The notes beneath the pieces are model-generated. The model ran no database searches and was not told the origin of the DNA. It worked only from the letters and a program-made list of their open reading frames with translations. Shown here in pieces: positions 1,740 through 63,334 of a DNA stretch of 64,000 bases. Each line of letters opens with the position of its first letter. Within the stretch, counting starts at the first letter, position 1. The translations under genes and the position numbers were made by a program. The stretch covers positions 394,730-458,729 of IMG/VR virus record IMGVR_UViG_3300028920_000022; one strand, given 5' to 3'.

Positions 1740-3146
1740 ATGGGAAAATTGAAGGTGTGGAAAGTTGGCGCAGCTGGAGAACCCAGTTTTCCTGCCAATT
1801 TTGAGGTGGCTAAAAAAGCCGTTCTCCAAGTTACAGATATTAAAACAAATCGTAATAAGTATTATGCCATAGAACTACACTCTGCTGGCAATAAATATAG
1901 AGTGTTTACTCATTATGGTCGAACAGATGATCTGGACACGAATCCTAATGCTGGGGTGCGCGAGGTTCGTTACGGCAACTTGTCTGAATGTGAAGCAACC
2001 TATCATCAGATATATAGTCAAAAAACTAGCGCAAGAAAAGGATATAAGGAACTTAGCTTAGCATCTTCGCGTATTGGTTCGTCTCAATCGGTTGGTAAAT
2101 CTAGCGGACATGTTGATGACAAAACGCTTGAAAAACTAAACAACGGTAACAAGAAAGTGATAAAAAACAAAGTTTCTACACTTTCTCCCGTTGTACAAGA
2201 TTTTGTTTCTTATATTTATGCTGAAGCCACTAATGCCCTAACTAGCACAATTAATGCCAGCATTACCGCTAATGGTATCGAAACGCCTCTTGGTGTTTTG
2301 ACACTGGGTCAGATTGATAAGGGGCAAAAGATTTTGGATGAGCTTTATGATTTATTCAATTCAAAAAAGAGCCAATCAATACGTGACCATATGGTAGAAC
2401 TGAGTGGTGAGTTTTATACAGTAATTCCTCACAGAATAGGCAGAACTAGGGCTGCTGTAGAAGCTGCTGTTATTGATAGTTTAGTAGATTTTAATGCTAA
2501 GCAAGACACATTACAACTTATGCGAGACATGTTAAGTGTTTCGGGTAAAGACTCCCAGGTACTTATTAACCCTGAAATTGATAAGAAATATAATGCTTTG
2601 GGTTGCGAAATTAAAACTGTAGATAATAAAAAGTATCAAGAATTGAAGGATTATGTAGAGAAATCACAAATAAAAACCAGAAATATTAAAGTAAAGAATA
2701 TATATTCATTATGCAGACCAGAAGAACAAAAGGTTTTTGCTGATAATATTTCAAATAAACGATTACTTTTTCACGGTTCTAGGGCAAAAAACTGGGTAGG
2801 TATTCTTTCCCGTGGTTTGTTGCTTCCTAAGATTGTGGTTAGCTTGGGTGTAAACCGAACTGACGCAGGTTGGCTTGGAAATGGTATTTATTTCGGAGAT
2901 GCTGTTTGCACTACATTATACTACACGTCTCCTGGAAGGCAGAGAAACACCCGGATGATGGCGATAGCGAATGTAGCATTAGGAAAGATGAAGGATTTTA
3001 ATAGAATTACGTATGGATTAAAAGGACCACCCGCTGGATATCATAGTTGTCATGGTGTACGTGGAACCTCATTTGCAGATGATGAATATGTAATTTATGA
3101 CCAGAAACAGCAGAAACTTGAGTATTTAGTGGAGTATGTGTCATGA
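1740..3146 (+). CDS. Poly(ADP-ribose) polymerase-family protein (WGR + regulatory + catalytic domains)
   Basis: WGR-like NKYY.IELH...HYGR; helical regulatory domain (FYTVIPH); catalytic LLFHGS, GNGIYF, DEYVIYD (H-Y-E). Confidence 0.9.
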   Translation: MGKLKVWKVGAAGEPSFPANFEVAKKAVLQVTDIKTNRNKYYAIELHSAGNKYRVFTHYGRTDDLDTNPNAGVREVRYGNLSECEATYHQIYSQKTSARKGYKELSLASSRIGSSQSVGKSSGHVDDKTLEKLNNGNKKVIKNKVSTLSPVVQDFVSYIYAEATNALTSTINASITANGIETPLGVLTLGQIDKGQKILDELYDLFNSKKSQSIRDHMVELSGEFYTVIPHRIGRTRAAVEAAVIDSLVDFNAKQDTLQLMRDMLSVSGKDSQVLINPEIDKKYNALGCEIKTVDNKKYQELKDYVEKSQIKTRNIKVKNIYSLCRPEEQKVFADNISNKRLLFHGSRAKNWVGILSRGLLLPKIVVSLGVNRTDAGWLGNGIYFGDAVCTTLYYTSPGRQRNTRMMAIANVALGKMKDFNRITYGLKGPPAGYHSCHGVRGTSFADDEYVIYDQKQQKLEYLVEYVS

Positions 3147-3373
3147 GAACATCAGAACGTTTTAAAAATGCCCTTGTTGATTTTCCGGATATAGACGGTA
3201 TTCCCATCACATTTACACGTGACGAGCTGCGCATAATGCTGATGTTATGCCAGTCTGTAGAACAATTGTGTAACGAGGCGGAATCGTACATAGACATTGG
3301 GTTTGATACGGACAATGAATCGGTTCGTTTACGGGAAGCTGTGCGTATTGTTCGAGAAACATTGTATGAATAA
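3143..3373 (+). CDS. Hypothetical protein
   Basis: ATGA overlap with the PARP stop. Confidence 0.6.
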   Translation: MRTSERFKNALVDFPDIDGIPITFTRDELRIMLMLCQSVEQLCNEAESYIDIGFDTDNESVRLREAVRIVRETLYE

Positions 3374-3397
3374 TTGATTCAAAGGGGAAGAGCTGCT

Positions 3398-3670
3398 ATG
3401 ATTAAGTTCACACAATATTTGCGACCGAACGGAATTAAACAAGCGGTAGAAATCAAAAGACCCAAAGCTGTTGAAGAAATGGCGGATAAGATTATAGAAG
3501 CCGGAGGAGAGTTTGAGGTAGAGGTTTTAAGCACCGGTACAATTTCGTTGGAGGTGGTGCGGGAAAAAGATGGAGATATGGAAACGTTGTCTGCAGAAAT
3601 TTGTGACAATGGTCCTGCTGTTTTGATTGCCGTAGACAAACTGGTAAAAGCGGCTTTTGATGCTTGTTAA
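3398..3670 (+). CDS. Hypothetical phage protein
   Basis: GGGG SD-like site before ATG 3398; operon context. Confidence 0.6.
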   Translation: MIKFTQYLRPNGIKQAVEIKRPKAVEEMADKIIEAGGEFEVEVLSTGTISLEVVREKDGDMETLSAEICDNGPAVLIAVDKLVKAAFDAC

Positions 3671-3682
3671 GTTAGACGGGTT

Positions 3683-4309
3683 GTGGAGGAGTACATCATG
3701 AGTGCTGATTTTTCAAAATGCTGGTTCAATACTTGGGAAATAGAAGGATACATTAAATCACGCCCATGGCGTGATTGTTGGGGAAACCACCAACCAAACT
3801 TCAATTGTTTCTTTAGAAATAGTTGTGGCAAATTATTTCCAATGAACGATGCTGTTAAAGATGTCATGTCGTCCCACGCTCGTGAAATATTGAGCAGGCA
3901 TCCACAGGTTCAGTTGTCAGAGTTTTTGGCAAGATTAGAAGATTCAAACAATTACATCTCTTTGCGGGATGGAATACTAGAATGGAAACGTCAATGTTTT
4001 GAGGAATATAAAAAATCTTTGGAACAAGAAGAATGTTACATCAAACATGCCCTGAAATATGGATATGATAAAGTTTTAGAATTGCCCATAGAAGATCAGG
4101 AATCGATAGATTTTACAGAAGGATCTGTGTTGTTGGAAGATGGCAAATTCTCTACCACCTTTCGCGATCATAATGGTGATATTTTTATCATAAGTGGCGA
4201 CACTGAGTTACCTCTTTCGATTAAAGAAGAATTTTTGAGCACCTATAATGGGCTAGGATCTGCCCAATATTCAGAAAACAGCGAGAAGCCCGAAGATGAT
4301 CAAAGATGA
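3683..4309 (+). CDS. Hypothetical protein
   Basis: Long ORF; GGAGGAG SD before ATG 3698. Confidence 0.65.
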   Translation: MEEYIMSADFSKCWFNTWEIEGYIKSRPWRDCWGNHQPNFNCFFRNSCGKLFPMNDAVKDVMSSHAREILSRHPQVQLSEFLARLEDSNNYISLRDGILEWKRQCFEEYKKSLEQEECYIKHALKYGYDKVLELPIEDQESIDFTEGSVLLEDGKFSTTFRDHNGDIFIISGDTELPLSIKEEFLSTYNGLGSAQYSENSEKPEDDQR

Positions 4310-4331
4310 TCAAAGCAGCTTTTGATGCGAT

Positions 4332-4574
4332 ATGAGAAATCACAGTTTCATTCGGGTGGAAACACCACAAAGTTACTCCGCTCACAAAACAGCACAGTAT
4401 TATAGATGTCAAAGATGTAATTTATTAATGTATGACACTGGCATTTCTCGTTACGTTTCTTGTCTGCATGATACTGGCATTATGCCAACGCCGCTTATGT
4501 CGCCAGACACAATAGACTGTGAAATGCAAGAAATAATATGGAAAGAAGAAATTATTAAGGACATAATAGAATGA
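4332..4574 (+). CDS. Small Cys protein, IKDIIE C-terminal tag family
   Basis: YYRCQRC motif; ends IIKDIIE; paralog of the next ORF. Confidence 0.65.
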   Translation: MRNHSFIRVETPQSYSAHKTAQYYRCQRCNLLMYDTGISRYVSCLHDTGIMPTPLMSPDTIDCEMQEIIWKEEIIKDIIE

Positions 4575-4819
4575 AACTTGGCACCCACGATTTTGTTGAA
4601 ATATGCGAACCTATAAATAGTCCAATTTTTAACGCAGAATGTCAATATTATCGATGTATACGATGTAATCTTTTGATTTATAAAAGTAAGCTTTATCATC
4701 CGGGAGAGTGTGTTACATCATTGGTAGAGAGTAGTAGAACAGTCTCACCAGATAGTATCAACTGTGCCGAACAAGAGAAAAAGTTTCGGTTACAATCGAT
4801 TAAGGACATAATAGAATGA
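4571..4819 (+). CDS. Small Cys protein, IKDIIE family
   Basis: YYRCIRC motif; ends SIKDIIE; ATGA coupling. Confidence 0.65.
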   Translation: MKLGTHDFVEICEPINSPIFNAECQYYRCIRCNLLIYKSKLYHPGECVTSLVESSRTVSPDSINCAEQEKKFRLQSIKDIIE

Positions 4820-5013
4820 ATCGAATGCACACCTGTGCTGAATGTGGAAATCTGTTATTAATTAGCAAAGGCCCAGACAGAACAAGAACAAACCGAGGAA
4901 AAACCATAATTTTACCTAACGATTTTGAATACGAATATTGCCCCAACTGCAAGGCTGAATGGATGACAGCAACACAAATTAACGATCTAAGCGATTTGTT
5001 TGATGGTAAATAA
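4816..5013 (+). CDS. YgiT/MqsA-type zinc-finger protein (orphan)
   Basis: CAEC...IILPNDFEYEYCPNCKAEWMT pattern; no HTH. Confidence 0.55.
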   Translation: MNRMHTCAECGNLLLISKGPDRTRTNRGKTIILPNDFEYEYCPNCKAEWMTATQINDLSDLFDGK

Positions 5014-5470
5014 TAATACAACCCGCGAGTTCGGAACCATTGTTGGGACTTTGTTTGGTAAGGAACCAGAACGTGGGTTTCTGGTGTGTTCAATAGATAT
5101 TGAATTCGACAGCGGAGGAAGACAAACATTTTGTTTTGGCGTGCCAGATCTGAAATTTATTCCTATTCTGCGTAGAGAAATATGTGGTATGTTTGGGGTT
5201 ACGAAAGAGAAAGCGCTGCTAAATCAAAAATGTTATGCTTTGAGATGTTTCCCTGGTAGAACTGAAATAATAGAAGGTATCGCCACAGAATCTGGCGCAA
5301 AGTTTACACGTGTAGGTTGGGCTAAGAGAATGGGGCTGGAACAGGAAACAGTAATACAAGAAAAGTATACTGAGTACCAAAAATTAAAACAGTACCATCG
5401 TAAATGCCTAGATGAAATTGAAGACAAGATGACCAAAATAATGTTTGAATACGTAGATTGGGAAAAATAA
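5000..5470 (+). CDS. Hypothetical protein
   Basis: ORF in operon. Confidence 0.6.
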   Translation: MMVNNNTTREFGTIVGTLFGKEPERGFLVCSIDIEFDSGGRQTFCFGVPDLKFIPILRREICGMFGVTKEKALLNQKCYALRCFPGRTEIIEGIATESGAKFTRVGWAKRMGLEQETVIQEKYTEYQKLKQYHRKCLDEIEDKMTKIMFEYVDWEK

Positions 5471-6132
5471 TGGGCGGAGAACTGTTTTTAGGAATCAAAC
5501 GCGCAGACGGCAGAGAACAATGTTCTTTGCGTTGGACGAATATTATTCCTTATTTTTTTGCACATCCCGAAATGTATGAGGAAGGAGCTATGTTTGAGGA
5601 GTTGTGGGATAGACCTAGCCCCAATAATAGTTGGCCACAATCTGTTTTAGTTACAAAAATAGTGCCGTCTGAATATGGTGCAATTTTCTATGATGGTGTC
5701 AACAAAAAGATTTTATCACTACAAGATTATTGCTCGATTGGATTATATTCGGTATCATTGCTGACGGAAGATAGTTACGATTTGTTTGGTGTTCTACTAA
5801 AAGAAGGTAGAATTAATGGCTCAAAAGTTTTGGGAAACCATAGTTTCGAAGATGTTGACAAGAATACCACCATTTCTGAGGTTCAACGGTGGATTAAGGA
5901 ACGTCTTGATTATCCTGTTCAGTATTGCCAATTGGAAATTGACACCAGACCGTTTGATGTGGTACATAGGGGAGTATCTGCAGCACACAAATGGGGATAT
6001 GTTCTAAACTGGCTGAAAGAAAATAATTGGAAAAGTTCGGCTTTGTCTCTAGACGAAGTGTGGGATCAGAAAGATATGCTTGAACATTATGACGACAAAC
6101 AGTCATATACAAAACAATCTATGGAGTTGTAA
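5470..6132 (+). CDS. Hypothetical protein
   Basis: TAATG coupling with the previous ORF. Confidence 0.6.
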   Translation: MGGELFLGIKRADGREQCSLRWTNIIPYFFAHPEMYEEGAMFEELWDRPSPNNSWPQSVLVTKIVPSEYGAIFYDGVNKKILSLQDYCSIGLYSVSLLTEDSYDLFGVLLKEGRINGSKVLGNHSFEDVDKNTTISEVQRWIKERLDYPVQYCQLEIDTRPFDVVHRGVSAAHKWGYVLNWLKENNWKSSALSLDEVWDQKDMLEHYDDKQSYTKQSMEL

Positions 6133-6134
6133 AA

Positions 6135-7277
6135 ATGATTAAATCTATGTTTGATGATGATCTTTACAAGTTCACAATGCAACAGATTATTTTGCATTTC
6201 TATGGAGACAAGAAAGCCGAATATAGATTTAAAAATCGTGGGAACACCAAGTTTAATGACAAGTTTGCTGATAGACTTCAGGATGAGATAGAGAACCTTT
6301 CTCTGTTGGTTCCCGACAAATATGAACTAGAAGAGTTTGCGAAGATTCCGTTTATTAGAGGAGATTATGTAGAGTACTTATCAAGGTATCGTTATGATCC
6401 ACGGCAGGTACAGTTTTCTTTGCGAGATGGAGATTTAGATCTTCGTATAAAGGGTCCATGGCATTCCGCTATATTGTGGGAAGTCAAACTGATGGCGCTA
6501 ATTAGTGAGATTTATTTTGCCCAACATAAAGCTACCTGGACAATGGATGGTCAAAAAGAAAAGCTTGATCGAAAAGCTCTTCTTTTAGAGGCGGTAGATG
6601 CTAAGTATGCCGATTTTGGTACTCGTCGCAGGCGTAGTTTTGAGGTTCAAGATTTGGTGGTAAGAAACCTTGTCAACAAACATGGGTTCCTGGGTACATC
6701 AAATGTACATTTAGCCATTAAACATGGTGTTTCCGCCGTGGGCACTATGGCTCACGAATGGGTTCAGGGTGTATCGGTAGCTGAGGATTTATTGCATGCT
6801 AATGGTATTATGATGGACAGATGGAATTCTTTTTATCAGGGACAGTTGGGTGTTGCTTTAACTGATACATTTACCACTCCGCACTTTTTATACAACAGTT
6901 TTGATGCCAAGCGCGCTGCTGCATTTTCTGGAGTTAGACAAGATTCGGGCGATCCGTTTTGGTTTGCGAATCAGGTGATAAATCGATACCTACAACTAGG
7001 AATTAACCCCAAAACCAAAACCATTATTTTTAGCGATAGTTTAGATGCCAAAACTGCCGCCAAACTACAGATCCATTGTGATGGAAAGATTAACTGTGCT
7101 TTTGGCATTGGCACCAATCTAACTAATGATTTTGACAATTTGAAACCAATTAATATGGTGATCAAGTTGTGGTCAATTGACGGAATTCCGGTAGTAAAGT
7201 TGTCAGATAATGCTGGCAAAAACAATGGCGATCTATGGATGCTTGGGGTTGCGAAGAGGGTGTTTGGGGTATCATGA
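6135..7277 (+). CDS. pncB: Nicotinate phosphoribosyltransferase
   Basis: DDDLYKFTMQQ, ADFGTRRR, GTSNV, GTMAHEW, ALTDTF, GVRQDSGDP, IIFSDSL, FGIGTNLT, VKLSD..GK motifs. Confidence 0.95.
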   Translation: MIKSMFDDDLYKFTMQQIILHFYGDKKAEYRFKNRGNTKFNDKFADRLQDEIENLSLLVPDKYELEEFAKIPFIRGDYVEYLSRYRYDPRQVQFSLRDGDLDLRIKGPWHSAILWEVKLMALISEIYFAQHKATWTMDGQKEKLDRKALLLEAVDAKYADFGTRRRRSFEVQDLVVRNLVNKHGFLGTSNVHLAIKHGVSAVGTMAHEWVQGVSVAEDLLHANGIMMDRWNSFYQGQLGVALTDTFTTPHFLYNSFDAKRAAAFSGVRQDSGDPFWFANQVINRYLQLGINPKTKTIIFSDSLDAKTAAKLQIHCDGKINCAFGIGTNLTNDFDNLKPINMVIKLWSIDGIPVVKLSDNAGKNNGDLWMLGVAKRVFGVS

Positions 7278-7525
7278 GTACAGAAAAAAAGATACGTAAG
7301 GTGCTCCGAAAAATCAAAACTGCTGATAATGTTTTGCAATCTGAAACCGATTGGGAGTTCAAATATAACATAATTTTTGGAATGGGCATCGTTGATGATT
7401 TGAACAATATAGGAATTCAACTTAATTATTACGATCCTGACACAACCTACGAGGAAGATGTGAGAGCATTTGTAGAAGCGTTGAATTGCATTAGTGGCGA
7501 TCTTGAAAAAGCGTTAATGTTATGA
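7274..7525 (+). CDS. Hypothetical protein
   Basis: ATGA overlap with the pncB stop. Confidence 0.6.
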   Translation: MSTEKKIRKVLRKIKTADNVLQSETDWEFKYNIIFGMGIVDDLNNIGIQLNYYDPDTTYEEDVRAFVEALNCISGDLEKALML

Positions 7526-7779
7526 TTACCATATTTGAAGCAATCATGTTATTAATAATGTTCCTGATTATTATAGGGGTGTATTTCGAAAAAAATATTC
7601 CTCGTTTAACGCAAGGTTCTACAATATTGATTGCGTTTAGTGTTTATGGCATTCTATGTGTTTTGGATTGGGTCGTATATGGTAGGAGTTCTTTAGTTTC
7701 ATATGTTGCTGTTTGTATTGGAATAATAATTTCCATAAAGCGAATGAGGTTTGAAAAGAAATGGCAAAAAACGAAATAG
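7522..7779 (+). CDS. Small membrane protein
   Basis: Three hydrophobic segments. Confidence 0.6.
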   Translation: MITIFEAIMLLIMFLIIIGVYFEKNIPRLTQGSTILIAFSVYGILCVLDWVVYGRSSLVSYVAVCIGIIISIKRMRFEKKWQKTK

Positions 7780-8291
7780 ACAATATGACCTCCGCCCAGC
7801 TATATGAGTTGGCAGAAAAAAAGAAAAAGGAAGAAGAATCCAGTTTTCTAATTGAACTGATGCGTAGTGAATCAAAATTCAAGAAAAGCATAGAAGACAA
7901 GGTTCCAGCAAACACCTTATCATCGTTAGTCAAAACGTATAATACTGTTGTGGAAGGAGTTTCGTGGGATCAAGACGTTGTACTTAGAGTTACCGTTTCT
8001 ACTAGTTTCTGGGCGGCTGTTAATGTTTCGTTAGAAAATAATTTATATTTTGAGTGGGAATGGTACAACTTAGAAGAAGTTGTCAATAAACAGTTAAATG
8101 AATGCGGAAAAAATAACAAAAAATTTCGTGATCTTACTAAGCGCATAGATGGTTTGAAAACAAAAATAAAAGAATGTGCCAAAAAGTACAAAGTGAAAGA
8201 AAAAGATTTGAAAAAATATTTAGAAAACTGTCGCAAAAAACCGCCTCCAACTTTCGAGTTAAATCAGCTTCCTCCAGGTACAACACTTTAG
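7761..8291 (+). CDS. Hypothetical Lys-rich coiled-coil protein
   Basis: ORF in operon. Confidence 0.6.
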   Translation: MAKNEIDNMTSAQLYELAEKKKKEEESSFLIELMRSESKFKKSIEDKVPANTLSSLVKTYNTVVEGVSWDQDVVLRVTVSTSFWAAVNVSLENNLYFEWEWYNLEEVVNKQLNECGKNNKKFRDLTKRIDGLKTKIKECAKKYKVKEKDLKKYLENCRKKPPPTFELNQLPPGTTL

Positions 8292-8304
8292 GAAAAAAAA
8301 TACT

Positions 8305-9321
8305 ATGTCAAAGCGAAATCTGGTTAAGTCTCGTGTTCGTGGAGCTATTTTGGGAACCGCAATTGGAGACGCCCTAGGTGCTCCATTTGAAATGATGGAA
8401 AAAGAACAAATACATAACCTATTGCCGGTTCCGTGGACATGGGGACAACAGCAGAAGGGTATAGTGTTTTCCGAAAACTTTGCTCATCCAAATCTAGGAA
8501 TCGGTCAATGGACCGATGATACTCAATTAATGCGCACTATTTTGTGGTCGATTATTGACGATCATGCCATTGATCCATATGGTATTGCTAAATATACCAG
8601 TGAGGTTTTTGAGAAAGAACAGCTTCGAGGATGGAGCAAATCCGTAATTTCTGCAGCAAAACGACTTTCTCGTGGGGTTCCGTGGTACGATTCTGCCAAC
8701 GAATCCATCGGTATTGGCAACGGTATCGCCATGAAAGCTGCTCCTTTGGGTATTTACCTGGCTAAATACCTGAAAAACGATTACAACTATTCTACCCATG
8801 AGTTTGGCGCCAACCTTAGACATGCCATTGTGTCTATTGTTGGTGTAGGACAAATTACCCACCATGAGCTGGGAATCATGGGTGGCGTAATGCAAAGTGT
8901 CTTAGTTGGTCTTTCGTTCAATAATGTCAAGAACAAGAAGTTGATTCTTAAGGTTCTGGGCAATATTGAAAAGGAATTTTCTGGTGCCACACGGTTTACA
9001 GATAAGCTAAGAATTGCGCTAAAATACAATAGTATTGCGGATGTGGCTGATAATATTGGAACAGACAGCAAGGCAGACAAATCCTGGGTAACTGCAGCTG
9101 CTGTTTTTCTCAACACCAAGAGGCGCAGTGATGCTGCAAAACGCATGATGGAGCTAATCTGCCAGGGCGGCGATTGTGATACTACCGGAGCAATGTTCGG
9201 AGCCTTAGCTGGAGCCCGTTGGGGAATTTCTGCTTTTCCCACGAATCTCAGGAAAGAAGTCGAGGCAAGCAAGGAACTGTTAAAGTTAGCAGATGGTTTG
9301 TATGGAGTGGTTTCTACTTGA
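8305..9321 (+). CDS. ADP-ribosylglycohydrolase (DraG/ARH family)
   Basis: GAILGTAIGDALG, GQWTDDT, GNGIAM, GGDCDTTGAMFGALAGA motifs. Confidence 0.93.
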   Translation: MSKRNLVKSRVRGAILGTAIGDALGAPFEMMEKEQIHNLLPVPWTWGQQQKGIVFSENFAHPNLGIGQWTDDTQLMRTILWSIIDDHAIDPYGIAKYTSEVFEKEQLRGWSKSVISAAKRLSRGVPWYDSANESIGIGNGIAMKAAPLGIYLAKYLKNDYNYSTHEFGANLRHAIVSIVGVGQITHHELGIMGGVMQSVLVGLSFNNVKNKKLILKVLGNIEKEFSGATRFTDKLRIALKYNSIADVADNIGTDSKADKSWVTAAAVFLNTKRRSDAAKRMMELICQGGDCDTTGAMFGALAGARWGISAFPTNLRKEVEASKELLKLADGLYGVVST

Positions 9322-32857: not shown

Positions 32858-34081
32858 CAAAAAAGAAGTCCTCTACTTTTAAGTGGAGGATGAATTTTTT
32901 CTTCCGTATCTACGCATAATTATTCATATTTTTGAAGATATGTTGGTTTACAAATACAGACTCTATCCCAGTAAAAAGCAGCAAGAAAAACTGTGGATAC
33001 ATGCGAATAAATTGAATTGGATCTATAACCAGTTTCTAGATCAGAAAATTAACACATATAAGAATACAAAAAAGAATCTCTCCAGATACGATCTACAAGC
33101 GCAATTACCGAAACTTAAACAACGAGATCCAGTAATTAAAGAAATACATTCGCAAGTTTTGCAACAGGTGCCCAAGCGTTTAAACCAAGCATTTAAAGAT
33201 TTTTACAAAAGAGGAAACAAAGGATTTCCAAACTTCAGATCTAGTTTGAACTTCTTCGGTATTTGTTATCCTCAGAGCGGATACTCTATATCAGGAAATG
33301 TCTTTAGAACGAAAATATACGGTAAAATGTCGTTTCTCAAATATCGCCCTATTCGTGGGAATATTCGACAAGTGTATATTACTAGTGAGAAAAATGGCTG
33401 GTTCATTTGTATAACAACTGACTATGAAAAAGATATTCCGAAAGCAACGGATAAGATCGGTATTGATGTAGGATTAAAGGATTTGGTTGTAACATCCGAA
33501 GGAAAACATATTAAAAACTGTAGTCATGCGAAATATTTTGACAAACAGATAGCGAAGATATCGTCAAGAATAGATAAGAAAAAGAATAAGAAATCCAGAT
33601 CTCGAAAGTTTCTGTGTAAAGTTCGGCGCAGATTGTATGATGTGAAAAAACGTAAGATTAACGATTTTCAACATAAAGTCTCGAAGAGACTTAGTTCCGA
33701 ATGCGATACAATATTTGCTGAGAATTTGAGTGTAAAGAAGATGAGTGAAGGAGAATTGCGGAACTTAAACAAGAGCATTCGAAATGCCAAATTAGCTAAT
33801 TTCATTTCGTATCTATCATACAAGACCAACACATTGGTGTTGGTCAATCCGAAGAACACAAGCAAGACATGTAATCATTGTGGGAATATTCGAGAGAATT
33901 TGAAGTTATCCGAGAGGACGATTACATGTGACAAATGTGGTGAAGTATATGATAGGGACGAAAATGCCGCTAAGAACGTTTATTGCCTGGGACAGGCTAT
34001 TCAGGATCTACAGTTAGAACCTGAGTATGCTGAATTATTTACGATTCAGGAAGCTCTTGCCTTAAGGCAAGAGTAGTTCAC
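32858..34081 (+). mobile_element. IS200/IS605-family (IS1341-like, tnpB-only) element, 1224 bp
   Basis: LE CAAAAAAG + hairpin TCCTCTAC-TTTTAA-GTGGAGGA; RE hairpin CTCTTGCCT-TA-AGGCAAGAG then TAGTTCAC; removing it restores the flanking reading frame. Confidence 0.85.
32940..34076 (+). CDS. tnpB: TnpB RNA-guided endonuclease
   Basis: YKYRLYP HTH; RuvC IGIDVG / AENL / DRDENAAKN (D-E-D intact); CxxC..CxxC ribbon. Confidence 0.95.
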   Translation: MLVYKYRLYPSKKQQEKLWIHANKLNWIYNQFLDQKINTYKNTKKNLSRYDLQAQLPKLKQRDPVIKEIHSQVLQQVPKRLNQAFKDFYKRGNKGFPNFRSSLNFFGICYPQSGYSISGNVFRTKIYGKMSFLKYRPIRGNIRQVYITSEKNGWFICITTDYEKDIPKATDKIGIDVGLKDLVVTSEGKHIKNCSHAKYFDKQIAKISSRIDKKKNKKSRSRKFLCKVRRRLYDVKKRKINDFQHKVSKRLSSECDTIFAENLSVKKMSEGELRNLNKSIRNAKLANFISYLSYKTNTLVLVNPKNTSKTCNHCGNIRENLKLSERTITCDKCGEVYDRDENAAKNVYCLGQAIQDLQLEPEYAELFTIQEALALRQE

Positions 34082-51944: not shown

Positions 51945-53336
51945 ATGCGCATATTTTTCTATCTAACGTTAATTTTTGTAATTTTGTTTTCTGTCAATTG
52001 TGGCAGCAGTTCAGAAAGTTCTCCAAATAAGGAAAACCATGCAACAGGTGGTAGCCAAATAAACGCTGCTGGTAGTGGTGGAGAAGGGGCAATAATGTCT
52101 GGAGCCAGCGGTATATACTCAAATATTAGTAATGGCGGGCAAAGCGGAAGTCAAATTATAGCTTCTGGTGGGGCTGCAGGAATTATTGAAATTACTGGCG
52201 GAAGTTCTACTAGTGATGGTCCCGGTTTAGGAGGGGGAACAACTAGTGATCCTGGTCCTAGCGTTGGTGGGGGCAGCACTCAGGATCCTGGTGGGGTAGG
52301 TGGCGGAACTACCGAAGATCCTGGTTCAGGCGGAGGAAACACTGATGATCCTGGCTCAGGTGGAGGATCTACGGTTGATCCTGGAGTTGGCGGAGGAAAT
52401 ACTGATGACCCAGGAACAGGTGGGGCTACCGCAGATCCCGGCTCAGGTGGAACAACAAGCCCAGGTTTGGGCGGAGCTACAGAAGACCCAGGTACTGGCG
52501 GAACCAATGACCCAGGTACCGGCGGAGCTACAGCAGATGGTGGTACTGGCGGGTACTCTCCTCCTGATGAAGATTGTCCATGGGTGTGTGTTCCTGCGGC
52601 AATTGAAGGTACAAATCTTATTGTTCTCAACGATGCGGCTCCAAGTGGTGCTGACGTAGAAGGTAGAATGTATGTCGGTAATAATGCTGTTTTACCTAGT
52701 GGCTATGCGGTAAATGCAGTAGAAACTATTGTGGGAGCTAATGAATATGCTTTAGTGGTTGGCAATGACCTTACTGTCAATGGCGGTACAGTTCATGGTG
52801 CTATCGCTTTTGGTGGCGAAATGAGCGGATCTATAACCGCAACAGGTGGAATTGTAAATGCTAGCCCAGTAGATTTTGAACAGCTTAGCAATGATATGTT
52901 GTACTGGAGCGATACTCTTGCCGAAACACCAGATAACGGAACGGTAAGCGGATCTTTGGTTTTGACTGGTACCGATTTAGAGGTCAATGTATTTACTGTA
53001 GATGCGTCAGCGTTGGCGGCAGCTAGTGGCTTATCAATTACAGTTCCAGATGATTCTACAGTACTCATTAACGTAACAGGTGCAGAGGTGTCTATCACCA
53101 ACATGGGCTTTAATTATATTGGCACAGATAGCCAACATGTTATGTTTAATATGCCTCAGGCTGAGACTGTCTTTATGAGCGGAATTAGTTTGCAGGGGAC
53201 TTTATTAGCGCCTCGTGCAGATTTGACCTTCGAAAACGGTAACGCTGAGGGACAAGTGATAGTGTATAATCTTGTTACCGGAGGCGGCGAATATCACCCA
53301 TACTACTTCACTGGTTGTCCCTGGGAATGTATATAG
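51945..53336 (+). CDS. Choice-of-anchor A family lipoprotein with Gly-rich repeat stalk
   Basis: Lipobox SVNC; DPGxGGG repeats; NLIVLND...DVEGRMYVG, NVF, TVLINVTG, VMFN, GTLLAPRA, GGEYH. Confidence 0.8.
   Translation: MRIFFYLTLIFVILFSVNCGSSSESSPNKENHATGGSQINAAGSGGEGAIMSGASGIYSNISNGGQSGSQIIASGGAAGIIEITGGSSTSDGPGLGGGTTSDPGPSVGGGSTQDPGGVGGGTTEDPGSGGGNTDDPGSGGGSTVDPGVGGGNTDDPGTGGATADPGSGGTTSPGLGGATEDPGTGGTNDPGTGGATADGGTGGYSPPDEDCPWVCVPAAIEGTNLIVLNDAAPSGADVEGRMYVGNNAVLPSGYAVNAVETIVGANEYALVVGNDLTVNGGTVHGAIAFGGEMSGSITATGGIVNASPVDFEQLSNDMLYWSDTLAETPDNGTVSGSLVLTGTDLEVNVFTVDASALAAASGLSITVPDDSTVLINVTGAEVSITNMGFNYIGTDSQHVMFNMPQAETVFMSGISLQGTLLAPRADLTFENGNAEGQVIVYNLVTGGGEYHPYYFTGCPWECI
52213..52545 (+). 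repeat. About ten Gly-rich D(P)GxGGxT repeat units
   Basis: GATCCTGGT/GACCCAGG-type units spaced ~27-36 bp. Confidence 0.75.
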
Positions 53337-56833: not shown

Positions 56834-56860
56834 AACGATAAATGGACAAAAATTAGTAGG

Positions 56861-56933
56861 CGGGTCCTGCGAGATTTGAACTCGCGTCTAAAAGCTTTAA
56901 AGGCTTTCGCTCTCGCCGCTGAGCTAAGGACCC
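56861..56933 (-). tRNA. Ochre suppressor tRNA (anticodon TTA), Lys-like body
   Basis: GGGTCCT/AGGACCC acceptor, GCTC/GAGC D-stem, AAAGC-CTTTAAA-GCTTT anticodon arm, GCGAG-TTCAAAT-CTCGC T-arm, G73. Confidence 0.92.
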
Positions 56934-58108: not shown

Positions 58109-58124
58109 GTCAATCTCCTAAAAA

Positions 58125-58242: not shown

Positions 58243-58731
58243 TCATCTATGGACCCTATTAATTGCCACATCTGGCTTATCTGGCTTATCTGGCTTATCT
58301 GGCTTATCAGGTTTATCAGGTTTGTCTGGCAAAACAGGTGCAGGTTTATCTACGGAAGCCGTTCCAATAGCTTTAATTTTCTTATCTTTATTATTTTGAA
58401 ATGTTGTCAAACGAGTATCTATTTTTTCTTGAAACAAATTTATAATATCAAGAACATCTTGTTGTCTAGGTCTTTCTGGTAGTGGAATTTGCCGCATTTC
58501 TAGGTAACTATTGTTTAGCTCCTGTTTAATATTATTACAACAGCCAGACTGTATTTGGTTGTATAAAAGCATTAAATCTACTAATGCAGCTTTTGCGTCT
58601 TTATCTAAATTATCTTGTTTTACACCGTATATTCTTCTTCCAATGATTTTGCGCAAACTTTTGTATCCGGCAAGTAGCCTATTTCCGCTTCTTATCGTAT
58701 TTAGAATAATTATTTTATTTTTGGTGTTCAT
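58243..58731 (-). CDS. Hypothetical protein with PDK repeats
   Basis: ATGA-coupled. Confidence 0.6.
   Translation of the reverse strand: MNTKNKIIILNTIRSGNRLLAGYKSLRKIIGRRIYGVKQDNLDKDAKAALVDLMLLYNQIQSGCCNNIKQELNNSYLEMRQIPLPERPRQQDVLDIINLFQEKIDTRLTTFQNNKDKKIKAIGTASVDKPAPVLPDKPDKPDKPDKPDKPDKPDVAINRVHR
58271..58330. repeat. 9-bp tandem repeat (TCTGGCTTA)n encoding PDK
   Basis: About 6.7 units. Confidence 0.9.
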
Positions 58732-58916
58732 TCTATTATGTTTTTGATATCGAAATCCCTATCAGAAATGGTACAAGGTCTTAGCCTTTTGTGCGGAATA
58801 TAGAAATTTCCTTTATAGACAGTAGTTCGTAGTTGTCTTTTTGTTTTTCCACATTTTAAGCAACGTTTTTGATTCCAGCCATTGTCGGTTTTCCATTTGT
58901 GCTTATAGTTCGCCAT
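58728..58916 (-). CDS. Small Cys protein, IKDIIE family
   Basis: CLKC; ends DIKNIIE. Confidence 0.6.
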   Translation of the reverse strand: MANYKHKWKTDNGWNQKRCLKCGKTKRQLRTTVYKGNFYIPHKRLRPCTISDRDFDIKNIIE

Positions 58917-59526
58917 TTTTAGTTGCCTGCATGTAGTGGTTTGCAACCCAAGGAAGATATTTCCTCCACTCTTGGCTCTGTTCATAACGCTTTTTATCAA
59001 AAATAGGATTACGCAACTTATCCAACACGATAAGTTTTGTTGGGTCTAAAACACAAACTTCGTCACGATCACCTGAAGTAATAAACCCCTTTAATGCAGA
59101 ATACCCTTGGGATCGCAAAATTATATTTGTAGCCAAATGTTTGTTTTGAATTTCGCTTTTATCAATTTTATCGATTAATGGTCGTTTTTCGAAAAAACCC
59201 CAGCCTCTAACATCTAAAGCTTTTCCAATAAAATCAAAAATAAACATGTTTTGGTATAAACTTACCGATTGCATATTGCTTTCAAATGAACCTATGTCAT
59301 TATTTCTTAATCTTTCTATGACCCTGTCACTAATTTCATAACCGTAGATACCAACGGGATTAAGTCCAGGATATCTTGGACGTGTATTTATGCCCAATTT
59401 ATCGGCAGAAGTGAAGTGTAAATATTTTCCAACATACTTTTCCAGTGTATAAAATACATCTTCCAGCTCCACACCCTCACGTTCATATCGGGTTTTTCCC
59501 ATTTTCTCCATACCTTTATGTGTCAA
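58903..59526 (-). CDS. Stand-alone paralog of the giant protein's N-terminal ART-like domain
   Basis: YLHFT..KLGIN...PVGIYGY...GYSAL...DEVCVLD. Confidence 0.6.
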   Translation of the reverse strand: MTHKGMEKMGKTRYEREGVELEDVFYTLEKYVGKYLHFTSADKLGINTRPRYPGLNPVGIYGYEISDRVIERLRNNDIGSFESNMQSVSLYQNMFIFDFIGKALDVRGWGFFEKRPLIDKIDKSEIQNKHLATNIILRSQGYSALKGFITSGDRDEVCVLDPTKLIVLDKLRNPIFDKKRYEQSQEWRKYLPWVANHYMQATKNGEL

Positions 59527-59756
59527 TATTGGATGGAAGGTTGTGTATCTATATCGTCCAGATTTTCTCTTATAAAATATAGATATCGCTCAAATTTCTT
59601 GGGGTTTTCTAGAAGTATTGTATATTCGGCGGGAGAAATTCCTAAGTATTCGTGTAGTGTCAAATTAGATTTGGACAAATTCCAATCTGTGATTTCGTCG
59701 TGGATATCCTCAAACTCAACCTCCCCTCTTAGGTAGCGTGTAAGAAAGTTTTCCAA
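59523..59756 (-). CDS. Small phage protein
   Basis: DIHDEI..W......LHEYLGIS..EY. Confidence 0.65.
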   Translation of the reverse strand: MENFLTRYLRGEVEFEDIHDEITDWNLSKSNLTLHEYLGISPAEYTILLENPKKFERYLYFIRENLDDIDTQPSIQY

Positions 59757-59766
59757 ACAGTCCTTT

Positions 59767-60279
59767 TTAGAGTATCGTTTTAATTTCCGGCAAATTGCGG
59801 CAGGTTTGTTTATAATCTAAACCATAACCAATCACAAATTTATCTTCAATCGTAAAACCAAGATAATCTATTTTTACTTCTTTCACTGTTTTTGCCGGTT
59901 TATGCAGTAATGAACATAACTTTACGGACTTTGGTTTTCTAGCTGATAGCATATCCAAAAGATATCTGGATGTCAAGCCTGTATCTACTACATCTTCCAC
60001 AATTAACACATGTTCATTTTCTATGGAGAAATTTAGATCGTGTGTAATTTGTACGAGACCACTAGATTTATTATCATCACCATAGCTTTGAACACCCATA
60101 AATCCTATTTTCATCGGTGTTTTTATTTGTCGTGATAAATCAGCCGTAAATATAAAACTACCCTTCAAAATACAAATCAATACTATTGATTTCCCGTCGT
60201 AATCCTTGGTAATCTGTTTGCCTAACTGTTTGATTTTATTACGTATTTTACGTTCTGAAATTAAAGTTTTCATGCGCAA
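59767..60279 (-). CDS. hpt: Hypoxanthine phosphoribosyltransferase
   Basis: ICILKGS.IF.ADL, VLIVEDVVDTGLT, LLHKP, FVIGYGLDY...RNLP. Confidence 0.95.
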   Translation of the reverse strand: MRMKTLISERKIRNKIKQLGKQITKDYDGKSIVLICILKGSFIFTADLSRQIKTPMKIGFMGVQSYGDDNKSSGLVQITHDLNFSIENEHVLIVEDVVDTGLTSRYLLDMLSARKPKSVKLCSLLHKPAKTVKEVKIDYLGFTIEDKFVIGYGLDYKQTCRNLPEIKTIL

Positions 60280-60360
60280 ATTGTAATCCTTCGTGGTCTG
60301 TTCGTTTGTAGCTCATTCAGATAGGCGTATTTGAAAAACATTTCGAAGATATTTTTTGAG

Positions 60361-60489
60361 TCAAGCACAGATTATGGTCCTTCGTGGGTGGTAATATCTA
60401 ATTGTTTGCCAATCATATTGACTCATCCAAATTTTGGAAGATATTAGGGACCAACTATTGATTTCTTTAAATACTTCTTTCTTGTCCAT
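60361..60489 (-). CDS. Mini-protein, ICA family
   Basis: Ends HPRRTIICA*; start uncertain (track start overlaps the MTase). Confidence 0.5.
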   Translation of the reverse strand: MDKKEVFKEINSWSLISSKIWMSQYDWQTIRYYHPRRTIICA

Positions 60490-60532
60490 AACGAATCTTT
60501 TGTGTGAACTTAATGTGACGGTTTTATTTTTG

Positions 60533-61630
60533 TTAGCATAAAACCTTTTTAAAATAGTAAAAGAAACGAGGAAAATCAGATCCGGGTTGTTGTAATGACT
60601 TTTTAATTTTAATGATTTCCAGTTTACCTGCGGTTTTTTCTTCAATCCAGCGTTTGTTAGGATAAGCTAATTTTCTATTACCACTTCCTTTTTGGGGATG
60701 ATCGTTGTTATTATACGTTTCTATCTCAATAATAACAATACCATCAATTTTAACAAGATTACTAACTAATGTAAAAAACTTTTCTTGACTATCTCCAAAA
60801 TAGTGAAACGTGGATGCGCAAAAAACAACATCAAAATTTTCGGAGCTATCAAAATTTAAAGCGTTGCAACATATAAATTTAACATTTTGTTTTCTAAATA
60901 CTCGATTATTTAATCTATTAGCAATACACAAAACATCTGGATTCACATCTATACCTACAATACTGCCCGAAGTCTGCTTGGCAATTTCAAAACAAAAAAA
61001 GCCATTATTACAGCCCACGTCTAAAAATGACTGTCCATCAGTTATTTCTATTTCTGCCAACTGTAATTTCGTTGGTGACATTGAATCACCGCGGTGATTA
61101 AAATCTGTAAATGATTGGTAGTTAATGCCCTTTTTTAATTTAGAAAAATCTATTCGTTTTAAGTCATCATGAGATTTAATACAAGCTTCTGGTATTGTTT
61201 TTTCGTCGTCAGTATGAAAATTAATTAGATTACGTTTATAAACAAGGGTATGTTGTTTTTGGAACTGTAATCTGCATATTTCATTGCACCCTAGTTCTTT
61301 AAGAATTTCAATCAATTCTTTTTCTATAGAAGATATAACGTATCCCTCTATCAAAACATCTACTATGCCTTCGGCTTTCTCGATTCCCTTTTGCAAGATT
61401 TTTTTCGTCACATGCAGATATCTAGTTTTATTCCATCTAAGGCTAGAACAGTGTAGCTGAATGTTTCTAACGAAACCCACCACTTTTTCATATTGAGGAT
61501 CTCTAAAAAAAGTATCCAAACAATATCGTTGTACGTTAGGGTTGTGTTCTTTGTAATAATGAGTCCAAGTTGTTTTCCCAGAATTGGGCATTCCTGCACA
61601 TAAAAACACCCGTAAATATTGAGCTGTCAC
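60533..61630 (-). CDS. P-loop kinase-like domain fused to class I SAM methyltransferase
   Basis: AGMPNSGKTT; FLDVGCNNGFF, GIDVN, FDVVFC.STFHY. Confidence 0.8.
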   Translation of the reverse strand: MTAQYLRVFLCAGMPNSGKTTWTHYYKEHNPNVQRYCLDTFFRDPQYEKVVGFVRNIQLHCSSLRWNKTRYLHVTKKILQKGIEKAEGIVDVLIEGYVISSIEKELIEILKELGCNEICRLQFQKQHTLVYKRNLINFHTDDEKTIPEACIKSHDDLKRIDFSKLKKGINYQSFTDFNHRGDSMSPTKLQLAEIEITDGQSFLDVGCNNGFFCFEIAKQTSGSIVGIDVNPDVLCIANRLNNRVFRKQNVKFICCNALNFDSSENFDVVFCASTFHYFGDSQEKFFTLVSNLVKIDGIVIIEIETYNNNDHPQKGSGNRKLAYPNKRWIEEKTAGKLEIIKIKKSLQQPGSDFPRFFYYFKKVLC

Positions 61631-61761
61631 TGGTATGCCCTATCGCCATATTTCCTAAACAATCTAATCGATAACATTAGTGCTAATGCCTCTGTTTGTT
61701 TACTGGGCTCTAATACTCTTAAAATAATTTAGAATGCAGCAGACGAGAGTAAATTCGTTTT

Positions 61762-61920
61762 TTAGGCACAGATTGTTGTGGTCCTTCTCTTGCCCCAATG
61801 TACATTAGAAAAAGCGGAACCCAGCATTAACATGGCTTTTTGCATCTTAATCAAGTTCTGTATATGGACATTGAGAATCTTTTCTGTGAATTTGTGGTGA
61901 CAAGTTGTTTTTGTTAGCAT
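61762..61920 (-). CDS. Mini-protein, ICA family
   Basis: Ends GKRRTTTICA*; start uncertain. Confidence 0.5.
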   Translation of the reverse strand: MLTKTTCHHKFTEKILNVHIQNLIKMQKAMLMLGSAFSNVHWGKRRTTTICA

Positions 61921-61936
61921 AATGTACAATTTGTGT

Positions 61937-62188
61937 ATGAGAATTTTTGTTACATTTCCTGAGGAAGATTTTGGTAGTGCTACGCTAGAAATACATGCAT
62001 CAACATCTTCTAATGTATTAGAACGATTACCTATAGCTTTGCGGAATATTGGTGTCAAATCTTTCTACGATTATATTTTTCAAAACGGAGATAAACTAAT
62101 TATTCAAGCTAAAATCGTAGACTATGACAAAAATAAACTTTCCTCTACAAAAGCTATAAACATACTAAAATCATTAAGCACAGATTAG
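61937..62188 (+). CDS. Hypothetical protein (opposite strand)
   Basis: Protein-like composition; no clear SD. Confidence 0.4.
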   Translation: MRIFVTFPEEDFGSATLEIHASTSSNVLERLPIALRNIGVKSFYDYIFQNGDKLIIQAKIVDYDKNKLSSTKAINILKSLSTD

Positions 62189-62296
62189 AACTCTATTTGG
62201 AGCGATTTCTATTAGCCCATAATCAACAAGACAATCTAAGAGATTACTAAGAACATCTGTGCAATTCTTTTGGACTATTACATTTCTTACGCACAT
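62174..62296 (-). CDS. Mini-protein (40 aa), ICA family (not in track)
   Basis: MCVRNVIVQKNCTDVLSNLLDCLVDYGLIEIAPNRVLICA*. Confidence 0.55.
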   Translation of the reverse strand: MCVRNVIVQKNCTDVLSNLLDCLVDYGLIEIAPNRVLICA

Positions 62297-62373
62297 ATTA
62301 AAACCCTTTTGGCGGGAACAATGCTAATTTCTATTATTTGAAAATCGTTGGGTATATAATTCCATCCATTCAT
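62287..62373 (-). CDS. Mini-protein (28 aa), ICA family (not in track)
   Basis: MNGWNYIPNDFQIIEISIVPAKRVLICA*; ATGA-coupled to the upstream gene with AAGGA SD. Confidence 0.6.
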   Translation of the reverse strand: MNGWNYIPNDFQIIEISIVPAKRVLICA

Positions 62374-62840
62374 TCTATTATATCCTTAATTAACAATTCA
62401 TTATATTTCTGAACGTTTATAAGAAAAACTTTCCAACTATTTCTTGCCCAAATAAATTTACCGCTTAATCTACCACCTTTTTCTAAACCTTCCCTAAAGG
62501 AACTAAAAACAAATTCATCAAATCTAAAATCAAATACAAAACCATCATCGGTTAGTATCTTAAATACAATCCGATCTCTACGATCCTCTAGATCAATAAC
62601 TGTTAGTCCCGAAAATTCGTTGTTTTTAATAATCTTTTTGCCGACTTTATGTTCGGTTTTAGTACCCCAACCGGTTCGCCATGTTTTTGCCCAATTTATT
62701 GCCGTATCATATGACTTCTTGCCTTTTTGAGCAATATCTAAAGGAAAAGCCGGAGTTCCTTCATAAGAATATCCGTAAAGATCTCCCGTTTGTTTCACGC
62801 CTTTAGGAAAAATATAGATAACTTCTTTTGGAATAATCAC
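62370..62840 (-). CDS. Hypothetical protein, IKDIIE family
   Basis: Ends LLIKDIIE. Confidence 0.65.
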   Translation of the reverse strand: MIIPKEVIYIFPKGVKQTGDLYGYSYEGTPAFPLDIAQKGKKSYDTAINWAKTWRTGWGTKTEHKVGKKIIKNNEFSGLTVIDLEDRRDRIVFKILTDDGFVFDFRFDEFVFSSFREGLEKGGRLSGKFIWARNSWKVFLINVQKYNELLIKDIIE

Positions 62841-63334
62841 GAATCCTCAGGTCTTTTGACAATGAAAACCTGAGTTTTGTACTTCGCCTCGACATGATCT
62901 GAAAATTTTTCGATAATTCTCTTATATACAGACCAATCTCCACCAGCTAAACCGCATCCTATTTTGTAAGGAAAAGCAATAGATTTAAGATTTTCTATGC
63001 CAGCAACCTTCAATAAACATTTATAGAAAAACTGTTTCCTGTCTTTAACAGAATCTTGCCAATGCAAAAACCGATTATTACTTGGTCTTCCGGGAAATAT
63101 TTGCGCAGTGGCATTAATTACATACCTATTATCTGCGTCACCTCTGATATAAATTTCTTCTGGTAAGTGCACATATTTGCCGTCTTTTCTTTCAGCATAA
63201 ATGTTGGCATAAGGGTATTTTTGAAACAAATACTGCGCCAACCCAGAGTATGTTTTAGAAACACAATTACACTGGTGTATTATATATTGGGCGTCAGATT
63301 CTAACAGGTCTCCGGATATTGTTTCAACCGGCAT
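62837..63334 (-). CDS. Macrodomain ADP-ribose hydrolase (Poa1p/TARG1-like)
   Basis: GDLL, IIHQCNC, GLA..LF.KYP, SIAFPYKIGCGLAGGDW. Confidence 0.9.
   Translation of the reverse strand: MPVETISGDLLESDAQYIIHQCNCVSKTYSGLAQYLFQKYPYANIYAERKDGKYVHLPEEIYIRGDADNRYVINATAQIFPGRPSNNRFLHWQDSVKDRKQFFYKCLLKVAGIENLKSIAFPYKIGCGLAGGDWSVYKRIIEKFSDHVEAKYKTQVFIVKRPEDS

Follow-up and report, generated by a model that had tools for sequence, protein, structure and literature searches.

The stretch of DNA analysed here (64,000 nucleotides, referred to as the window) comprises bases 394730-458729, the last 64 kb, of the 458,729-bp IMG/VR virus record IMGVR_UViG_3300028920_000022, which is rated complete by CheckV. 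A sequence-only reading of the window had named six genes in it, encoding a PARP (here PARP1), the nicotinate phosphoribosyltransferase PncB, an ADP-ribosylglycohydrolase (ARH), an intact and a degenerate macrodomain and a SLOG protein, and had combined them into a circuit of ADP-ribosylation, its reversal and NAD+ supply. All six genes are real (Table 1), and they are considered here together with a second PARP gene and other NAD+ and ADP-ribose genes found elsewhere in the genome. Since the record ends in an exact repeat of its first 136 bases, the assembly can be closed into a circle of about 458.6 kb. The IMG/VR label for the record is linear, and the end repeat would fit either a circularly closed assembly or terminal redundancy.

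Table 1. Features of the window and further NAD+/ADP-ribose genes of the genome (window positions unless marked as genome positions; aa, amino acids; nt, nucleotides; ORF, open reading frame; HD, helical domain; ART, ADP-ribosyltransferase domain)
Feature	Position	Strand	Basis or remark
PARP1, WGR - PARP_reg/HD - ART, 468 aa	1740-3146	+	Pfam
Promoter, sigma-70-like, TTGACA-17-TATCAT	1685-1713	+	11/12 consensus match; 27 nt before PARP1 ATG
Eight short packed ORFs, 65-224 aa	3143-6132	+	Between PARP1 and pncB
PncB, nicotinate phosphoribosyltransferase, 380 aa	6135-7277	+	Pfam NAPRTase_N and NAPRTase
Three short ORFs	7235-8291	+	Between pncB and ARH
ADP-ribosylglycohydrolase, ARH/DraG family, 338 aa	8305-9321	+	Pfam ADP_ribosyl_GH, E 3.9e-44; last gene before 162-nt gap
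Degenerate macrodomain, 152 aa	13621-14079 (open frame from 13594)	+	SCO6735/BT1257 fold; likely start 13621
SLOG protein, YpsA clade, 164 aa	54164-54658	-	Pfam YpsA 63.2 bits (cut-off 27.7), residues 3-144
Intact macrodomain, SCO6735/BT1257 type, 175 aa	62837-63364	-	AlphaFold2, Foldseek, KIGCGLAGG loop
PARP2, second WGR-HD-ART PARP	genome 382629-384098		12 kb upstream of PARP1, outside the window
NADAR	genome 157817-158458		Whole-genome family search
PncA, equivalog level	genome 115797-116396		NF008623 278.7 bits (cut-off 174)
NadD-like adenylyltransferase	genome 29332-29826		GGSFNPPHVGH and ISSTRIR motifs
NudF-like Nudix	genome 109451-110104		Whole-genome family search
Terminator-like hairpin, strong, 14 pairs	1560-1590		Upstream of tRNA-Met call
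tRNA-Met(CAT) call, 86 nt	1597-1682	+	ARAGORN; between the hairpin and the PARP1 promoter
TnpB / IS605 OrfB-type gene	32883-34076	+	HTH_OrfB_IS605, OrfB_IS605 and Cas12f1-like TNB domains; inserted in long - strand block
HEAT/LRV-repeat protein, 1727 aa	34434-40663	-	Adjoins SPASM-domain (radical-SAM-type) protein
463-aa protein with ice-binding-like adhesive domain	51945-53336	+	pAdhesive_15, E 3e-48

The three domains attributed to PARP1 by the sequence-only reading all score above their Pfam cut-offs, namely WGR (35.6 bits, cut-off 22), the helical regulatory domain PARP_reg at residues 146-264, N-terminal to the ART domain (63.5, cut-off 26.8), and the PARP catalytic domain (107.2, cut-off 26.7). 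The catalytic triad H345-Y384-E449 is invariant in an alignment of 18 sequences (A1) and aligns with the motifs of PARP4. The WGR domain is of the 'YGR' variant (H58-Y59-G60-R61), and the blocks N39-K40-Y42, Y59-G60-R61 and K100-G101-Y102, which are invariant or nearly so in the same alignment, agree with the 'YGR' motif of bacterial PARPs and with the DNA-binding positions described as co-evolving in them (PMC5966428). In a phmmer search of the PDB, human PARP4 gives the best match, through its HD-ART region (158 bits, E 3e-45, residues 145-466), and the WGR-CAT regions of PARP2 and PARP1 match at about 97 and 90 bits, respectively. BRCT, zinc-finger, vWA/VIT and vault-binding regions are all absent from the phage protein, which has only 468 residues. 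PARP4 is deposited as a mono-ADP-ribosyltransferase.

Homologues of phage PARP1 fall into more than 900 clusters, with identity up to 82%, and WGR-PARPs are already annotated in the phages XacN1, Xoo-sp13 and FBKp34. The protein is a member of a large family that is found in bacteria and phages and carries the bacterial 'YGR' signature, and the term 'eukaryote-like' that had been applied to it is misleading. The architecture was also said to be uncommon; this holds among reference genomes, but it is common enough in metagenomes and is not new for phages. The PARPs of Herpetosiphon aurantiacus (HaPARP) and Clostridioides difficile CD160 (CdPARP) share with it the three domains, 'YGR' for WGR and the H-Y-E triad; both enzymes have in vitro activity, and HaPARP has to be activated by DNA (PMC8120803). 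Whereas these bacterial enzymes have a dedicated hydrolase (PARG) encoded alongside, the phage has no PARG, and the SCO6735-type macrodomain and the ARH are its candidate erasers. Moreover, unlike the bacterial PARP-PARG system, the phage has two PARP paralogues, with 25% identity to each other, and NAD+ salvage genes, in a 459-kb genome.

The promoter in front of PARP1 is the sole 11/12 match in the window, where 0.05 would be expected by chance, and the window-wide total of promoter-like sites is no higher than chance; the consensus promoter described earlier is present, as a match to the consensus only. PARP1 opens an array of 14 ORFs (1740-9321), all on the + strand with gaps of at most 22 nucleotides, whose tight packing suggests co-transcription. 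The view that PARP, pncB and ARH are co-operonic agrees with this packing, but the arrangement is not kept in the closest phage relatives. No Pfam, PHROGs or ESM Atlas match was obtained for those short ORFs between PARP1 and pncB that were tested, and the three between pncB and ARH had no match in PHROGs or the ESM Atlas. A candidate hairpin over the Shine-Dalgarno region of PARP1 was rejected, its fold being no better than that of shuffled sequence (z -1.0). The tRNA-Met call upstream was not recovered by the Rfam tRNA model at its gathering threshold and may represent a tRNA that is atypical or degenerate. Ahead of the promoter, a non-coding stretch (900-1490, + strand) contains three copies of an element of about 60 nucleotides (core ACGCGAnnTTAGATCTTTCATC ... 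GGGTCTnnnnGTTTTTTCGTTAC; about 905-968, 1273-1329 and 1429-1490) and a tandem 15-mer at 1056-1085, and an Rfam search of this stretch matched no family.

The two enzymes named downstream of PARP1 are well founded. PncB passes both NCBIfam cut-offs at the equivalog level (NF003704, 431 bits against 379; TIGR01514, 394 against 269.6). In the ARH, residues E29, D71/D72/T73 and D290/D292/T293 align with the metal-site motifs of ARH3, the binuclear-metal ligands are intact and the motifs GDALGAPFE, WTDDT and GGDCDTT are present; its matches in the PDB are MJ1187, ARH3 and DraG. Both genes are present in a single copy in the genome.

The intact macrodomain scores below the Pfam threshold (19.6 bits, cut-off 22), but its fold and its phosphate loop (KIGCGLAGG, residues 134-142) bear out the identity given to it. 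The proposed AlphaFold check, run on the two macrodomains, returned the macrodomain fold for both, with a predicted local distance difference test score (pLDDT) of 92.7 for the intact and 92.2 for the degenerate protein, and members of the SCO6735/BT1257 subgroup (ALC1/TARG1 branch) are the best fold and sequence matches of both. For the intact protein, which has 184 homologues, the best Foldseek matches are BT1257 (top), DarG, Poa1p and TARG1. It matches the DarG models of NCBIfam (E 6.5e-7, positions 2-138 of 338 only) and PADLOC (E 5e-9), but it does not qualify as a DarG, since Q88, invariant in 32 sequences, takes the position of TARG1 Lys84 and of the catalytic lysine of the DarG 'PTK' motif, and the C-terminal DarT-binding domain is absent from its 175 residues. 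The same glutamine and a loop of the same type (RIGCGLAGG) are found in SCO6735, which is DNA-damage inducible and hydrolyses Glu-linked mono-ADP-ribose on PARP1 E988Q and PARP10 (PMC5087735).

The degenerate macrodomain gave no match in a Pfam search. It is nevertheless related to BT1257 by phmmer against the PDB (2FG1, E 8e-8) and by Foldseek (template modelling scores of 0.87-0.89 to 2AFC, 2FG1 and 5E3B, i.e. BT1257 and SCO6735), and the label of degenerate macrodomain proved apt: the HQCNC motif and the IGCGLAGG phosphate-binding loop are both lost in it and in its four orthologues (66-72% identity; alignment A3), which lie on four other contigs. A more distant relative retains both motifs. 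The protein is probably a non-catalytic member of the SCO6735/BT1257 subgroup, and no loop-less member is described in PMC5087735. The SLOG protein, also correctly identified from the letters, belongs to the YpsA clade, is encoded by a single gene in the genome and matches the PADLOC model of the antitoxin ShosA (E 3.8e-8).

PARP2 has the same architecture as PARP1 and an H-Y-E triad of its own. No PARG of either type (PF05028, PF10021) was found in the whole 458.7-kb genome, PF10021 being present in two other PARP-bearing phage records. A complete Preiss-Handler or nicotinamide salvage pathway is not encoded: PncA and PncB pass their cut-offs, the NadD-like protein reaches the family level only (TIGR00482, 97 bits against 112), and the genome search found no NadE, its sole PP-loop match being a TilS-like protein. 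This TilS-like gene adjoins that of the NudF-like Nudix (genome 108556-110104). The gene after PncA (genome 115797-117700) has an N-terminus that resembles, by eye only, a tRNA-binding domain fused to an RNA-ligase-like region. In the 12 kb between PARP2 and PARP1 (genome region 376.5-396.4 kb, L046) genes for a DUF4379 zinc-finger protein, a GMP-reductase/IMPDH-family protein, an RNase T-type exonuclease and an APS kinase were observed, all on the + strand, with a second RNase T-type exonuclease upstream of PARP2. In phage XacN1 a GMP reductase lies about 5 kb from the PARP.

Megablast of 1740-9321 against GenBank phages and a single-sequence search for the locus in IMG/VR gave no match, and an alignment-profile search was needed to find relatives. 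Three megaphage lineages (L016/L017, L018 and the 506-kb contig L045) share an arrangement in which the PARP2, Macro, NADAR, SLOG and PARP1 orthologues succeed one another in this order, on one strand and within about 11 kb. The Macro gene follows PARP2 in L016, L018 and L045, a setting unlike that of DarG, and the SLOG gene lies immediately upstream of PARP1 in L015 and L045 and close to it in L016 and L018. Only about 10% of the other ORFs in the loci with the five-gene cluster have a homologue in the present genome; as so little else is conserved, the cluster has been selectively retained. A second association concerns the ARH. Among 11 further PARP-bearing phage records, eight carry a NAPRTase-family gene and four an ARH, and the two genes lie 1-3 kb apart in four of the five phage records that have both, the present genome counted (G003, G004, W04 [LR756500.1, 43.5-45.6 kb] and the window at 6135-9321). 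This adjacency suggests a link of de-ADP-ribosylation with the rebuilding of NAD+ that is independent of PARP.

Type XIII retrons are the classic myxobacterial elements that produce multicopy single-stranded DNA (msDNA); the bacterial orthologues of phage PARP1 lie beside them. A scan of species-representative genomes yielded at least 118 PARP loci, of which 80 were retained and 50 had enough flank for neighbourhood counts (loci inspected: L014, L038, L040, L043, L044 and L048-L127). The orthologues of the 80 retained loci are 55-66% identical to phage PARP1 over the full length, and their hosts are mostly Myxococcota and Planctomycetota, with a few Proteobacteria and Acidobacteriota. The order in the bacterial islands is (ARH) - PARP - Macro - HEAT/ARM - SWIM - reverse transcriptase (RT). 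The macrodomain gene is immediately downstream of PARP in 43 of the 50 loci (86%), the full Macro - HEAT/ARM - SWIM - RT series is present in 30 (60%) and an ARH is nearby in 19; all five loci inspected gene by gene have the PARP-Macro-HEAT-SWIM-RT series. PADLOC assigns the last three genes to type XIII retrons (RT_XIII, E 1e-166; SWIM_XIII, E 4e-190; HEAT-ARM_XIII/WGR_XIII). In addition, one bacterial protein of 753 amino acids (P0083, L038:10001-12262) naturally combines WGR-PARP_reg-PARP and a macrodomain in one chain; the retron HEAT, SWIM and RT genes come after this fusion gene, and a second, divergent PARP is encoded 6 kb upstream. No such island is present in the phage, whose genome contains no reverse transcriptase (RVT_1), and the 1727-residue HEAT protein of the window, considered as a homologue of the retron HEAT/ARM protein, was rejected because the two are not homologous. 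In a maximum-likelihood tree of 17 PARP1 orthologues and PARP2, nine of 15 forks are unsupported, and neither phage monophyly nor a direction of transfer has support.

Taken together, these neighbourhoods support, at the level of comparative genomics, a functional link between writers and erasers, and we favour, tentatively, the reading that the phage may carry its own reversible ADP-ribosylation system. The writers would be two divergent WGR-HD-ART enzymes, PARP1 and PARP2. If PARP1-3 and the Herpetosiphon PARP are taken as a guide, the WGR domain would bind a nucleic-acid end or nick (a DNA discontinuity), this binding would relieve the autoinhibition exerted by the helical domain, and the H-Y-E site would then move ADP-ribose from NAD+ onto the PARP itself and nearby proteins, possibly also onto DNA ends. 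The product is likelier to be mono-ADP-ribose or short chains than a long polymer, since no PARG of either type is encoded, the catalytic domain is closest to that of PARP4 and the intact macrodomain belongs to the SCO6735 subgroup, which takes off Glu-linked mono-ADP-ribose made by PARPs (PMC5087735); the first two of these points argue weakly for such a product and, PARP4 being mono-ADP-ribosylating, 'PARylation' is not implied for phage PARP1. The marks could be removed by the SCO6735-type macrodomain and the ARH3/DraG-like ARH, and NADAR could act on base-linked ADP-ribose. The loop-less macrodomain paralogue and the YpsA SLOG protein may be accessory, non-catalytic or ligand-binding parts. 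The nicotinamide released by the writers would be recycled by PncA, PncB and the NadD-like enzyme to nicotinic acid adenine dinucleotide (NaAD), from which host NadE would complete NAD+, and the NudF-like Nudix may dispose of free ADP-ribose. The analysis demonstrates the domains, the catalytic residues, the folds, the order of the genes and their conserved neighbourhoods. The DNA dependence, the targets, the choice between mono- and poly-ADP-ribosylation, the pairing of erasers with marks and the biological purpose are points that we infer; the purpose we prefer is that the phage controls in this way how its own DNA is replicated and repaired while it infects.

Several observations weigh against this reversible system. 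Its parts are dispersed in the present genome, with the Macro and SLOG genes 52-61 kb from PARP1 and on the other strand, and the NADAR, PncA and NadD-like genes hundreds of kb distant. The closest phage relatives of PARP1 have not kept the PARP-pncB-ARH arrangement, and the 460-kb and 480-kb phages with the closest PARP1 orthologues on large contigs have no such partners within 10 kb. Homologues of Macro and SLOG also occur in phage loci with no PARP, beside UvdE/PNKP or RNA ligase genes. In L018 the PARP1 gene is an internally deleted relic (L018:10001-10353, IMG/VR 3300049217_000071; about 117 amino acids, in which query residues 9-77 run straight into 415-465), while the neighbouring PARP2, Macro, NADAR and SLOG genes are intact. 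PncB uses nicotinate, and salvage consequently depends on PncA and on host NadE. No RNA sequencing run contains the phage sequence. Moreover, passages of PMC9503650 indicate that macro, SLOG, NADAR and NAD genes are common in jumbo phages, with or without a PARP, as a means of counter-defence. The circuit put forward in the sequence-only reading is therefore upheld in part: the five-gene order, the PARP-Macro pairs with their fusion and the ARH-NAPRTase pairs speak for it, while the unconserved operon and the PARP-less Macro and SLOG loci speak against it.

The genes might instead form a counter-defence toolkit and not a closed circuit, their clustering reflecting a shared 'NAD/ADP-ribose conflict island' and not a writer-eraser pairing, which we regard as somewhat unlikely. 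Macro, NADAR and ARH would then strip ADP-ribose placed by the host (e.g. by DarT1 or DarT2) from phage DNA or proteins, the SLOG protein would be an orphan antitoxin or a sponge or degrader of signals, PncA, PncB and NadD would rebuild NAD+ against NADase defences, and the PARPs would independently modify host targets. The matches of the macrodomain to DarG models and structures and of the SLOG protein to ShosA fit such a toolkit, as do the Macro and SLOG homologues with no PARP nearby. The orphan phage NADARs (AdfN), which are experimentally established stand-alone de-ADP-ribosylases, neutralise DarTG1 (PMC11825919). Furthermore, parts of PMC9503650 predict that viral YpsA SLOGs counter signals of the cyclic ADP-ribose (cADPR) type and propose phage NAD+ synthesis genes as a counter to host NAD+ depletion, and clusters including pncB-nadD-nadE are documented for jumbo phages in passages of PMC11662467. 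On the other hand, the macrodomain has glutamine in place of the catalytic lysine of DarG and TARG1, as SCO6735 does, and lacks the C-terminal half of DarG (175 residues against a 338-position model). A writer-eraser link is also favoured by the five-gene order and its two PARPs, which recur in three phage lineages that diverge in other respects, by the pairing of the bacterial orthologue with a macrodomain of its own in 86% of loci and by the natural fusion protein. If the erasers do act on host marks, the locus adds to the anti-DarT and anti-NADase tools of phages.

The bacterial islands raise the further possibility, which appears quite unlikely to us, that an immune module was captured, the bacterial PARP being part of a type XIII retron defence island from which megaphages took it up. 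There the bacterial WGR-PARP would sense msDNA, its disturbance or invading DNA ends and then ADP-ribosylate targets, and the phage would turn its PARP on competing phages (superinfection exclusion) or have it act as an antagonist of, or a decoy for, the host retron-PARP system. The gene series in all five loci inspected by gene and in 30 of 50 species-representative loci, the PADLOC assignments and the full-length identity between phage and bacterial PARPs are in keeping with this, and the accessory protein of type XIII retrons has itself been described as WGR-like (PMC7736814). However, the phage has neither a reverse transcriptase nor a relative of the retron HEAT protein, most forks of the PARP tree are unsupported and give no direction of transfer, and the literature searched reports no anti-phage role for type XIII retrons or for this PARP. 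An extended version of this idea is speculative and unlikely: in Myxococcota and Planctomycetota the PARP family would belong to type XIII retron immunity as an arm so far overlooked, in which the WGR-PARP reads msDNA or the ends of invading DNA and is buffered by a macrodomain and an ARH of its own. Megaphages would have captured the PARP and rewired it with other erasers (an SCO6735-type Macro, NADAR, SLOG and, as a decoy, the loop-less Macro) and with NAD+ salvage that they encode themselves, in order to antagonise the host system or to exclude rival phages. Finally, it is improbable that there is no functional link at all and that six unrelated accessory genes merely share NAD+/ADP-ribose chemistry in a very large genome. 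It is true that the parts lie scattered through 62 kb of the window, on either strand, and elsewhere in the genome, that the closest PARP1-bearing phages have not kept the PARP-pncB-ARH arrangement, and that, with a macro domain in 56% and a SLOG in 31% of jumbo phages, figures given in passages of PMC9503650, co-residence is expected by chance. Nevertheless PARP2-Macro-NADAR-SLOG-PARP1 clusters of unchanged order are conspicuous in loci with little other conservation, and neither the bacterial PARP-Macro adjacency with its fusion protein nor the ARH and NAPRTase-family genes lying close together in four of five phage records is in accord with unlinked genes.

PARP signalling is usually viewed as a eukaryotic DNA-damage system, with few bacterial examples. 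The components of a reversible phage system and the general idea are already known, phage WGR-PARPs and NAD+/ADP-ribose networks having been described. In the relevant passages of Iyer et al. 2022 (PMC9503650), PARP-family ARTs, macro, ARG/ARH, NADAR, YpsA SLOG, Nudix and NAD+ synthesis genes are catalogued in large phages, with ARG domains in only about 5% of jumbo phages, and passages of PMC11662467 describe 'NAD-jumbo phages' with PARP and pncB-nadD-nadE clusters. The passages covered of these two papers contain no conserved PARP2-Macro-NADAR-SLOG-PARP1 order, no ARH-NAPRTase adjacency and no link to type XIII retrons. In the literature searched as a whole, the five-gene order, the loop-less macrodomain paralogue, the ARH-NAPRTase adjacency and the bacterial orthologues beside type XIII retrons were not found, and the retron literature searched makes no mention of PARP, macro or ADP-ribosylation. 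Type XIII retrons of the Mx162/Mx65 class consist of an RT, a SWIM/DEDE protein and a WGR-like HEAT/ARM protein; bacterial PARP orthologues are directly upstream of these in 60% of loci, whereas the phage has none of the retron genes. This neighbourhood link is strong and apparently unreported, and it makes the function of bacterial PARPs and that of type XIII retrons a joint testable question. A compact, sequence-defined set, with two enzymes to write the mark, three or four to erase it and a salvage route, could reveal what prokaryotic and viral WGR-PARPs sense and modify, and the naturally loop-less macrodomain might serve as a decoy or reader.

The genome has a G+C content of 39.5%, and a weak large-terminase match, tail-lysozyme-like genes and four tRNA calls are consistent with a megaphage. 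Among sequencing runs, only DNA metagenomes from marine sediment contain the sequence. A tRNA at window positions 56859-56933 on the - strand (Rfam, 71.5 bits) has the anticodon UUA, which would read the UAA stop and is suppressor-like. An alternative genetic code, which this tRNA had brought into consideration, was rejected, as TAA, TGA and TAG all end long frames and frames of at least 100 amino acids cover 88% of the genome under table 11. The protein with the adhesive domain (Table 1) is encoded by the only long + strand ORF among the local - strand genes, in the bin with the highest G+C content of the window (0.425).

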